A stretch of DNA of 64,000 nt from Entomortierella parvispora E1425. Its lineage: Eukaryota; Fungi; Mortierellomycota. The translations under genes were made by a program, and so were the position numbers. Shown here piece by piece: positions 46,830 to 50,040 of the stretch. Location of the stretch: the NCBI GenBank assembly GCA_020891255.1, contig BQFW01000015.1, positions 2,046,001 through 2,110,000 on the forward strand, written 5' to 3'. The notes beneath the pieces are model-generated. The model was not told the origin of the DNA. It saw only the letters and a program-made list of their open reading frames with translations, and did not search any database. Numbering within the stretch: the stretch's first letter is position 1; each line of letters begins with the position of its first letter.

Positions 46830-47098
46830 TTGGGTAAAACTTTCTTGGAATGAAGGGAGGAAGAGAGGAAGGTGAATGAGGAGAACACAGAGGAAAGAGA
46901 GCGTCCCTGACCCTTTTCTTGTCCTTTTCTGGGCGCATGACCCGCAACCAGGCCACTGTGGGCACGTGCAGTACGCCACCAAAGTACGACTGTAGAAAGG
47001 GGTCATGCATTCAATCACCATGCTTGCCGCATGCTCTCTTTCCTCCTCGCCCTTGAACATCGGTTCGCACATTTCACTCCCTGTCCCAGTCTGGATGC

Positions 47099-48105
47099 AT
47101 GAATCACTCCAGGACCCATCAGGATGAGGCGGCTGAGGAAGAGCTCTCTATTGTCCATCGCATCCTCGGTCAGGCTTCGTTTGTGCTCGAGAGTCCCACG
47201 CTCTTTGACCAGCTTTGGACCCCTGCCTATCTTGCACGGTCTTTTCAATGGACAGAACATCTACAATCGATCATCAAGGGCAATACGCGAGACGATGCCT
47301 TAAGAGATGACTTGGATGTGGACGATGATCAAGAGGTCGACCCTAAAACCACGATAGCTCGATTCTTGGAGAGATCAAAGGCAAAAGGCCCGTCCACAAT
47401 CAAGGTCCAAGGCAAGGACAAGGAACTGGTCCCTGTCACCTTGGAAGAAATGGCGGATCCTACAAACACCCTCTGCAGTCGACTACTCCACAATCCAGTC
47501 ATTTCGGACCGTGTGAGAAAAGAAGTTGTCGACTTTATGGTGACGAATGAATCCAGGGGTATCCAAACACCCGTCCATACAAGGGCCACGGCACAGCTCT
47601 TGGCCAGCATACAATCCCATATGAAGCAAGTCCCTCCACCGTTGCAGATTGTTGCTACTATTGATGAAGGTATGTACGGACTCTAGTAAACGCCCTCCCC
47701 TCCTTTTTTGGTCCAAAAACAATAACGGCAACGCCTCACTCTCTATGCACAGAGGAATTACATCATCGAGCACAAGCGCAAGCTATTTTAGAAAGAGTTC
47801 GTAATGCTGGGTCAGCGATCGACCAGGAGACCACACTTCGACGCTTGGATGAGTACCTGATCCAAGCACGATCAGAAGCCATGGTAAACCAACTTTTGAC
47901 TCTACACGGATTCTGGTTCTTTCCTGAAGATACCATGTTCTGATCTTGACCTTTTTTGTTTTTTCCAACATAGGCCGTTATCCGTCAACTGATGCTCATC
48001 ACTGAAGAGGACAAGGAAGAAGACAAGGCAACAGTAGACGTCTACCTGGAGGCGTTTCGAGCAGCCTTGTCTGCTCGATTGCAGGGCTACAGCAAATCAA
48101 AATAA
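47099..48105 (+). CDS. FANCF-like protein (277 aa), exons 47099-47669, 47753-47883, 47974-48105
   Basis: Canonical GT-AG introns give one continuous frame. Three colinear blocks resemble human FANCF as recalled: WTPAYLARSFQWTEHLQSI, LCSRLLHNPVISDRVR and RAQAQAILERVRNAG. Confidence 0.68.
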
Positions 48106-48354
48106 AATGGCCTGTCTTTCTCTCGTATCAAAGCCACCTGATTTTTGGTGTACCTTTCGCGTTCACCTTTTTTTTTTTTTCTTTTCATTCTTCTTTACAT
48201 TTATTCATTCACCCCATTCATTCAGTCGAAAGCACATTTGGACGCTCAGCTTTCGAATCAGGATCTCAAACAAAGAAACCAATAGACGACGCTTGGTTTG
48301 CACCTCCAAACTATCTTCAAGAATACACCAGCAAAATCTCACTATCACAACAAC

Positions 48355-50040
48355 ATGGCTTGGGGCGGTGGAAACGCAAACAGTGTGGACGCATGGGTGA
48401 AACGACTCAAAGAGAACGACAGTTCTTTCACCAGTCTCCACATCCTCTCCTTCCGCAGAGTCACCAGTGCAGAGCTCGGACGAGTCTTTGAGGCCCTGGA
48501 GGACAACTCGACTCTCAAAGAACTCTATGCCTCGGGACATGCTCTAGACGAGGAAGCCGTTCAAAAGTTGGCCACATCGCTGCAAAAGAACACCACGTTG
48601 GAGAGACTCAACATTGGAAACGATACTGTCGGCGCACGATTCGGTGTGATCCGTGTCCTGATGGATGGTTTGGCCCTGAACAAAGGCTTGGTCAAGCTGG
48701 ATCTGGAAAACAAAGGCTTGGGAGGTCTTCAGGAAGAAGGAGCGTCGACTGATGCCGGTATCGGAAGCGTTCAAAGCCTGGCCCGTGCTCTGGAAAAGAA
48801 TGAAACTCTCAGGGAACTGAACTTGGCCCGGAACAAGCTGACGGACAAGGATGTTTCGGTCCTCTGTCAGGCCCTCGCCAAGAACAAGTCGCTTCAGAAA
48901 TTGGATCTTTGCCTCAATGATTTCAAGATGCAGGGCACGCAGGCCGTCGCTGACATGTTGGCGGGTCAGAACCAACTCGTGGAAGAGACGCACTTGGGAT
49001 TGAGGGAAGTGGATCTGAGTGATAACGACATTACGGAGGAAGGAGGAAAGGCTATCGGACGTTCCCTGGCTACAAACAAGGTCTTGCAGAGACTGAGAAT
49101 GAGCTCCTGCATGGATCCACCCTTGCCAGTGGAGGAGGACGATGAAGACAAGATTCCCTTGGATGATGAAGTCCAGGCTTTGAACAAGGCTTTGACCAAG
49201 GAAGAGGAGGCAGAGATCGTTTCGGATGGCGATGCCGTTGTGGGAGCGATTGCAGAGTCACTCAAGGCTAACTCGACCCTTCAGGAACTTTGGATGGACT
49301 TTTGCAACATTTCCTCTATCGGAGCCACGACTTTGGCCCATGCTTTGAGACAGAACCGAGGTCTGACTACGTTGCGGATGCGCAACAACCGCATTGGCAA
49401 CCGAGGTGCACGCTCCTTGGGTGCAGCATTGACGCCGGCTTCAGGACCTGCGGGACATGATGACAGTGCATCTGGATCAGTCACTCGACACAACATTACG
49501 TTGATGAACCTGGAGCTGGGCTCCAACAAAATTGGCGTCTTGGGTTGGCACGGTCTTGTGGGTGCTAGCTCACTCGAAAGTTTGGGTCTGTATGATAACC
49601 AGGTCTCTGTGCTCCATGAGGCATTGGAGACGCACAACAAGCTTTCAGAGGAATCATCATCGACACCAGAAGTTAATGCCGCCGACATGGCCAATGGATC
49701 CAGCTCTGAACAAGCTCTCCAGAGACTTGTTCATCTTGATGTCGGCTGCAACGCGATCTCGCGTGATAGCTTCACGCAATTGGGAGAGTGTTTGATCAAG
49801 GGCATGCTGCCTGCTCTTATCCGACTCGAGATTGCCGGCAATGGCGACCGATCCGAAGCACCTGAGAATGGCGATGGCGATGAGGAGGAAGGTCCCACCG
49901 ATCCTGAGGACCCAGACCAGGATCCCGGTCAGAGCGAGGAGCAAACGGCCTGGGAAAACGTGGCTACAAAGGTGGAAGAGGCTCGGCCGGCCTTGGCCAT
50001 TCACTGGAAGGGCGCAGGCGCGATGCAACAGCAACAATAG
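48355..50040 (+). CDS. Intronless RNI-like leucine-rich-repeat protein (about 561 aa)
   Basis: Repeated LxxLxLxxNxIxxxG units (TLRELNLARNKL, SLQKLDLCLNDF, GLREVDLSDNDITEEGG, GLTTLRMRNNRIGNRGA) with acidic insertions; first likely ATG at 48355. Confidence 0.88.
   Translation: MAWGGGNANSVDAWVKRLKENDSSFTSLHILSFRRVTSAELGRVFEALEDNSTLKELYASGHALDEEAVQKLATSLQKNTTLERLNIGNDTVGARFGVIRVLMDGLALNKGLVKLDLENKGLGGLQEEGASTDAGIGSVQSLARALEKNETLRELNLARNKLTDKDVSVLCQALAKNKSLQKLDLCLNDFKMQGTQAVADMLAGQNQLVEETHLGLREVDLSDNDITEEGGKAIGRSLATNKVLQRLRMSSCMDPPLPVEEDDEDKIPLDDEVQALNKALTKEEEAEIVSDGDAVVGAIAESLKANSTLQELWMDFCNISSIGATTLAHALRQNRGLTTLRMRNNRIGNRGARSLGAALTPASGPAGHDDSASGSVTRHNITLMNLELGSNKIGVLGWHGLVGASSLESLGLYDNQVSVLHEALETHNKLSEESSSTPEVNAADMANGSSSEQALQRLVHLDVGCNAISRDSFTQLGECLIKGMLPALIRLEIAGNGDRSEAPENGDGDEEEGPTDPEDPDQDPGQSEEQTAWENVATKVEEARPALAIHWKGAGAMQQQQ

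Follow-up and report, generated by a model that had tools for sequence, protein, structure and literature searches.

Does the fungal kingdom hold FANCF? Barua et al. (2024) reported FANCF, FANCC and FANCG to be absent from fungi, FANCF from all of them (PMC11061109), as the initial annotation of the present locus had correctly stated. The question is raised by a small gene on the forward strand of a 64,000-nucleotide stretch of the genome of Entomortierella parvispora E1425 (Mortierellomycota; assembly GCA_020891255.1, contig BQFW01000015.1, positions 2,046,001 to 2,110,000). This whole stretch is hereafter called the window, and positions are counted from its first letter. Our results support the view that the gene is a genuine, truncated and highly divergent FANCF orthologue that is conserved in the Mortierellaceae. 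We consider it very probable that its product represents FANCF in the Mortierellaceae, an orthologue of the adaptor subunit of the FANCC-FANCE-FANCF (C-E-F) module of the Fanconi anaemia core ubiquitin ligase. A search of the literature found no other publication linking FANCF with early-diverging fungi.

The spliced FANCF-like gene occupies window positions 47099-48105 (+), comprises 834 nt and encodes 277 amino acids (aa). Its parts are given below, together with the first two of three sequence blocks that the initial annotation had set against human FANCF.

47099..47669, + strand: exon 1, with the ATG at 47099 and a GT donor at 47670; codons 1-190 and the first base of codon 191; codes for the N-terminal domain resembling FANCF
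47201..47272, + strand: block 1, residues 35-58, LFDQLWTPAYLARSFQWTEHLQSI
47471..47530, + strand: block 2, residues 125-144, LCSRLLHNPVISDRVRKEVV
47670..47752, + strand: intron 1, 83 nt, GT-AG, phase 1
47753..47883, + strand: exon 2, the rest of codon 191 to codon 234; contains block 3 and the onset of the helical C-terminal part
47884..47973, + strand: intron 2, 90 nt, GT-AG, phase 0
47974..48105, + strand: exon 3, codons 235-277 and the TAA stop; end of the protein

The clean three-exon, 277-aa structure first proposed for this gene was borne out by the GT-AG splicing and by a GenBank entry of equal length, 'hypothetical protein EMPS_11324 [Entomortierella parvispora]' (277 aa, 100% identity over exon 1). 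An acceptor at 47754 was also tried for intron 1 and was rejected; the frame was lost with it and was kept only with the acceptor at 47752. Since EMPS_11324 stands in GenBank as a hypothetical protein, the gene is annotated, though without a name. In addition, a precomputed tag for the Pfam FANCF family, PF11107, was present on this entry in the protein collection. The early impression that the gene was unannotated was therefore mistaken.

Sequence and fold evidence for FANCF

When the 277-aa protein was compared with PF11107 (InterPro IPR035428), it scored 36 bits (E 5.4e-9), which is above the curated gathering cut-off of 24 bits for this family, so that the Pfam check suggested in the initial annotation was passed. 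The alignment formed one stretch, residues 39-253 on profile positions 25-221 of 346, and no competing family was found. With exon 1 alone, PF11107 was the sole family matched, at 20.1 bits (E 3.7e-4), just below the cut-off, and the addition of exons 2 and 3 raised this score to 36 bits. The Gryganskiella orthologue and a metagenomic fragment (P0003 and P0002) also exceeded the cut-off, with 26.9 and 25.9 bits, respectively. Overall, PF11107 was matched at E<=0.01 by 7 of the 20 family members that were scanned singly, and no other family was common to them. All three blocks were present, at residues 35-58, 125-144 and 191-210, and each of them lay within the PF11107 alignment; at the level of single letters, the match of the blocks to human FANCF proposed in the initial annotation is a putative one.

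The structure was predicted with AlphaFold2 (AF2) from an alignment of 18 sequences, which gave a mean pLDDT (predicted local distance difference test) value of 80.2; this model replaced one built from 4 sequences, which was too poor (pLDDT 61). The model showed an N-terminal domain of good confidence (residues 9-155), which includes a small beta hairpin at 100-109, followed by helices in the C-terminal part (190-275). The highest confidence was reached in the block 2 region (residues 125-144, pLDDT 91-96), while an acidic insert at 63-78 was poorly predicted and the linker at 156-185 was of low confidence.

A Foldseek search of this model against the PDB placed human FANCF (7kzp_F) first among 350,542 chains, with an E value of 2.1e-3 and a probability of 1.00; the second match was 100-fold weaker. 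The combination of AlphaFold and Foldseek had been proposed as a check on the original assignment, and it returned the expected protein. Against the Swiss-Prot part of the AlphaFold database (AFDB; 550,129 models), mouse and human FANCF ranked first and second (E 1.9e-3), and query residues 10-275 were aligned on residues 2-246 of the 374 in human FANCF. Among the AFDB clusters, three named 'Fanconi anemia group F protein' held ranks 4-6 (E 5.4e-4 to 7.8e-4), and the shape search of the ESM Atlas returned a chordate FANCF cluster at rank 1 (130 residues, root-mean-square deviation (rmsd) 4.0). VIA-align against the PDB, both with and without the Foldseek prefilter, also gave 7kzp_F as the top match (rank 1 of 48,161 chains without the prefilter), with Z 11.1 over 116 residues, an rmsd of 3.6 and 19% identity, the model residues 9-153 lying on human FANCF residues 1-132. 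Without Foldseek, VIA-align further placed model residues 191-269 on residues 159-244 of 2iqc_A, the crystal structure of the FANCF C-terminal domain (Z 6.5, rmsd 2.2, 23% identity), and this match was collinear with the N-terminal match to 7kzp_F. The N-terminal domain is predicted to have the fold of the human FANCF N-terminal domain, and the modelled helices of the C-terminal part probably correspond to the repeats with which the C-terminal domain of human FANCF opens. Sequence and structure together agree on FANCF and on no other family. Given the Pfam E value of 5.4e-9 and the fold searches, the resemblance to FANCF is far beyond chance, and the initial proposal that the gene is a plausible FANCF homologue was upheld, FANCF being the only family picked out by the profile and structure tests.

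The fold searches also returned proteins that bear no FANCF name. In the Swiss-Prot AFDB, the third match was Q54I66 of Dictyostelium discoideum (DDB_G0288973, 461 aa; E 0.1, probability 0.89, aligned over 4-290). The reference table of the 2024 survey contains no FANCF entry for Dictyostelium, and Q54I66 may be an unrecognised FANCF. Five AFDB clusters with no names or odd ones (A0A7M7HMN8, A0A397W486, A0A1S3J7N5, A0A167LMA5 and A0A1X2IH04; E 3.7e-5 to 2.2e-2) scored on par with or above the named FANCF clusters, one of the five being named 'Cullin N-terminal domain-containing protein' (160 aa). From their accession series, we suspect that some of these clusters come from other early-diverging fungi.

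Conservation in the Mortierellaceae and the reported absence from fungi

An exhaustive profile search of 1.84 billion representatives collected 21 proteins at E<=0.001. Every named one came from the Mortierellaceae and all were 'hypothetical', the genera being Entomortierella, Haplosporangium, Mortierella, Lobosporangium, Podila, Benniella and Actinomortierella. A word-indexed protein search with alignments of 3 and 18 members added one fragment and then no further members. The proteomes used by Barua et al. (2024) include those of Entomortierella lignicola, Haplosporangium sp. Z 27, Gryganskiella cystojenkinii, Lobosporangium transversale, both Actinomortierella species, Podila minutissima, Mortierella antarctica and M. 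polycephala (PMC11061109), and the exhaustive search found the FANCF-like family in each of these species. The family is therefore present in several of the surveyed proteomes, and its reported absence reflects a limit of sensitivity. That survey applied BLASTp at 1e-5, with no FANCF queries other than human Q9NPI8 and mouse E9Q5Z5 (PMC11061109); it missed the fungal FANCF because of this choice of method and queries. These findings show that FANCF is present throughout the Mortierellaceae and correct the published statement of its absence from fungi.

The most conserved columns of the fungal family coincided with blocks 1 and 2 (W40 T41 P42 and F49 W51 T52 H54 L55 in the former; P121 L125 R128 L129 N132 in the latter region). 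The residues P121, L125, R128, L129 and N132 were invariant in 18 of 18 aligned members. Block 1 was conserved through the Mortierellaceae, with W40, T41, P42, A43, Y44, L45, F49, W51, T52, H54 and L55 invariant among close members. In the comparison with the Gryganskiella orthologue, the nonsynonymous and synonymous divergences (pN and pS) were 0.30 and 0.73 for the whole gene, at which level synonymous divergence is saturated, and 0.31 and 0.65 for exons 2 and 3. As judged from these sequence comparisons, the FANCF-like family is under purifying selection.

The introns were also conserved. The Gryganskiella orthologue (L001:6001-7041) has two introns, of which intron 2 shares the alignment column and phase of intron 2 in the window, and intron 1 is in phase 1, one codon away from intron 1 in the window. 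In the orthologue of Mortierella sp. GBAus27b, there are three GT-AG introns, and the third has the column and phase of window intron 2. Contigs of four GBAus27b runs (L004-L007, from SRR6256836-39) carried an uninterrupted open reading frame (ORF) of 834 nt and 277 aa and were identical to the genome except that the three introns were gone; they were therefore derived from spliced RNA. In a fifth run, SRR6256840, a contig of 959 nt carried an ORF of 207 aa from a close relative. The three-exon gene is real, conserved and intron-containing. In Lobosporangium transversale, two models of 309 and 317 aa (P0007 and P0024) differ by eight residues, VGPRSESL, at the conserved last intron, and this length difference is an alternative splice-site call.

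The acidic insert was the fastest-evolving part of the FANCF-like gene. In one run filed under the E. parvispora label, contigs covering window positions 47085-47481 were ~86-90% identical to exon 1, with a diverged segment of equal length at 47262-47357. These differences point to a related strain or species filed under one name.

The truncated C terminus and the proposed role

The fungal protein ends opposite residue ~246 of human FANCF, so that the last ~125 human residues (about 247-374) are without a counterpart. In vertebrates, the site of FANCG binding was placed first in the last 131 residues of FANCF and later in the last 40 (PMC3364535), and this C-terminal end is absent from the fungal protein. 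The lack of this FANCG-binding end agrees with a reduced core complex in a lineage from which no FANCG is known. The initial annotation had held that the N-terminal half was kept and that most of the FANCG-binding domain was gone, and the alignments to residues 2-246 of 374 in human FANCF and positions 25-221 of 346 in the profile supported this in outline. We also considered that a fourth exon might encode the missing part, but rejected this, since the stop codon is followed by ~250 nt and then by a gene with leucine-rich repeats (LRR), and the spliced transcript of a relative ends at the equivalent place. In the spliced GBAus27b transcript, the FANCF-like ORF ended 301 nt before the LRR gene. 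The FANCG-binding end is a feature of vertebrate FANCF and not of the whole Pfam family.

Human FANCF (Q9NPI8; 7KZP chain F; 2IQC) shares with the fungal protein the Pfam family PF11107, the predicted fold of the N-terminal domain and the order of the domains. However, it has 374 residues rather than 277, the overall identity is 17-20%, and the fungal acidic insert (63-78) and linker (156-185) have no confident human counterpart. The C-terminal domain in 2IQC covers residues 156-357, only the first part of which is putatively matched by the fungal protein. Arabidopsis FANCF (AT5G44010, F4K7F0) resembles the fungal protein, by published description, as a non-animal FANCF recognised only through weak sequence similarity, and it acts with FANCC and FANCE, which sets a precedent for a C-E-F module outside animals (PMC10085685). 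The Arabidopsis protein is backed by genetic and interaction data, whereas the fungal protein is known here from sequence and predicted structure. The other two members of the same subcomplex, FANCC and FANCE, were identified in Rhizopus azygosporus (RCH79564.1 and RCH90546.1) by Singh et al. (2023), being detectable only with PSI-BLAST and HHpred, and no fungal FANCF was named in that study (PMC10085685). Their presence shows that some fungi have kept the module. These are other proteins, however, and come from another subphylum, the Mucoromycotina. Together, the fungal FANCF found here and the FANCC and FANCE of Rhizopus make it probable that the C-E-F substrate-recognition module in its entirety is older than the divergence of animals from fungi and has persisted in early-diverging fungi.

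In the human core complex, the FANCC-FANCF interface measures ~6300 A2, and FANCG touches two conserved loops of FANCF (10.1101/854158). Deletion of FANCF residues 1-158 abolished FANCM binding (PMC3364535), and the MM1 helices of FANCM have been modelled across the FANCF N-terminal domain (PMC12263834). FANCM-stimulated ubiquitination of FANCD2-FANCI needs FANCF, and FANCF is dispensable for the basal activity of the core complex in vitro (PMC12263834). Class II crossovers are limited by the C-E-F module in Arabidopsis (PMC10085685). If the fungal protein behaves like its human and plant counterparts, its N-terminal domain and first repeats would pack against a fungal FANCC, with FANCE, and may offer a docking surface to the FANCM MM1 helices. 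The protein could then couple FANCM at a stalled fork to the FANCL-dependent monoubiquitination of FANCD2-FANCI and/or, as in Arabidopsis, limit meiotic crossovers together with FANCM. It would act as the adaptor of a reduced C-E-F module that docks on FANCC and FANCM and lacks the FANCG-binding end.

Mortierellomycotina have been reported to hold and express FANCL, FANCM, FANCD2 and FANCI, the expression being that in Lobosporangium (PMC11061109). We tentatively suggest, while regarding it as an open wager rather than the expected outcome, that Mortierellomycota run a minimal Fanconi core composed of FANCM, FANCL and a C-E-F module whose FANCF is naturally truncated, and lacking FANCA, FANCB, FANCG and FAAP100. 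If this is true, the FANCF N-terminal domain and first repeats would represent the ancestral and sufficient adaptor, the FANCG-binding end would be either a later addition or a loss shared with FANCG, and Mortierellomycota would offer a natural minimal system for the share of FANCF in FANCD2 ubiquitination and crossover control. That the FANCG-binding end has been lost naturally in a lineage where FANCG is not detectable represents co-variation between partners, and the Mortierellaceae provide a small and genetically tractable system for the study of FANCF function. The step is a modest one: the family was known, the protein already carried an automatic Pfam tag, and a fungal FANCF was half expected given FANCC and FANCE in Rhizopus. 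Nevertheless, the gene fills the last gap in the fungal C-E-F module and supplies a naturally minimal form of FANCF.

Alternative explanations and the neighbouring genes

Several results weigh against the identification of this gene as FANCF and against its proposed role. In the reciprocal direction, the 18-member family profile found no FANCF at E<=10 among 177,635 PDB sequences, nor did phmmer with the EMPS_11324 protein alone find one among the PDB sequences; both gave chance matches only (E 0.4-1.7). The exhaustive profile search reached only Mortierellaceae-like proteins at E<=1e-3, so that the Pfam model is the one link to FANCF at the level of sequence. A search of the language-model atlas gave no usable lead, its best score of 0.74 lying under the noise level of the tool. 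On the structural side, 2iqc_A ranked only 37th, amid many generic helical-repeat matches of similar Z, and the global template modelling (TM) scores to FANCF were low (0.27-0.34), the match being made domain by domain. With regard to transcription, runs under the same species label yielded pieces ~85-90% similar to exon 1 and no splice joints. With regard to the pathway, FANCE was reported in only one species of Mortierellomycotina, a Linnemannia (PMC11061109). The failed reciprocal search is a lack of sensitivity and gives no pointer to another family, and the low global TM-scores arise from a difference in how the two parts are placed relative to each other.

The alternative that survives best, although we consider it unlikely, is that the gene descends from FANCF but, after losing its C-terminal third, has left the Fanconi core complex and been kept for a role peculiar to the lineage, such as partnership with the syntenic LRR protein, or only for FANCM-linked control of meiotic crossovers without FANCD2 ubiquitination. 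The missing counterpart of the C-terminal ~125 human residues, the distance of the family from animal FANCF (15-20% identity) and the dispensability of FANCF for basal core-complex activity in vitro (PMC12263834) would all be in keeping with such a departure, as would the LRR gene, which adjoins in every locus seen and is joined with the FANCF-like gene in RNA-derived contigs. However, the parts that were kept and are most conserved are those facing FANCC and FANCM in human FANCF (10.1101/854158; PMC12263834), and FANCL, FANCM, FANCD2 and FANCI are reportedly retained and expressed in Mortierellomycotina (PMC11061109). Synteny and the merged contigs are the whole of the support for a functional link with the LRR gene, and since RNA assemblies often merge adjacent genes in compact fungal genomes, a joint contig shows no such link.

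It is considerably less probable that the gene encodes an unrelated, Mortierellaceae-specific helical protein whose likeness to FANCF is convergent or due to chance among helical repeat proteins. Helical folds easily give middling scores, and according to the note of the alignment tool, Z values below about 13 can reflect a common helical arrangement; the reciprocal profile searches without FANCF and the global TM-scores of <0.35 point in the same direction. However, the Pfam match (E 5.4e-9) is above a curated threshold, and six further members match PF11107 at E<=0.01. FANCF was the single top match in four structure-library searches by different methods and near the top in the AFDB clusters, and it stood 100-fold ahead of the second Foldseek match. 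In addition, both domains match in collinear order, the beta hairpin at 100-109 sets the matched N-terminal domain apart from a plain repeat, and the conserved positions of the fungal family are those within the Pfam alignment. Finally, an incorrect gene model, in which exons 2 and 3 lie outside the transcript and the real product is the 195-aa ORF of exon 1, is scarcely credible, for although no RNA-seq run of E. parvispora covers the gene and some short database entries (P0002 and P0004, for example) extend no further than exon 1, these entries derive from contigs of 683-1093 nt that read through into the intron, exons 2 and 3 are under purifying selection (pN 0.31 vs. pS 0.65) and raise the Pfam score from 20.1 to 36 bits, the position and phase of the intron are conserved in three species, and spliced RNA-derived contigs of GBAus27b carry the full 277-aa ORF.

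The surroundings of the FANCF-like gene were conserved as well. The order Memo (-), FANCF-like (+) and LRR (+) was found in all three loci (the window, Gryganskiella and GBAus27b); the window and Gryganskiella further shared an AMP-binding gene (+) on the downstream side, and the window and GBAus27b shared a C2H2 gene on the upstream side. The neighbour directly downstream in the window is as follows.

48355-50040, + strand: LRR gene, intron-less, 561 aa, with LRR_6, LRR_4 and LRR_8 domains

Between the two genes, at window positions 48160-48200, there is a poly-T or T-rich tract that was matched by short unrelated contigs from all runs; it is of low complexity and marks no feature. Each of the RNA-derived GBAus27b contigs L004-L007 (2.9-5.3 kb) spanned both the FANCF-like gene in spliced form and the LRR gene, which has no intron, and the longer ones, L004-L006, also extended into a convergent NUDIX/zf-CCCH gene. 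These long joint contigs suggest a compact locus with read-through or overlapping transcripts. In a metagenome-assembled genome (MAG) of Benniella sp., one model (KAK3827669.1, P0018, 757 aa) fuses the FANCF-like protein with the LRR neighbour and a C2H2 zinc-finger part, and this fusion is likely an annotation artefact that reflects the conserved gene order.

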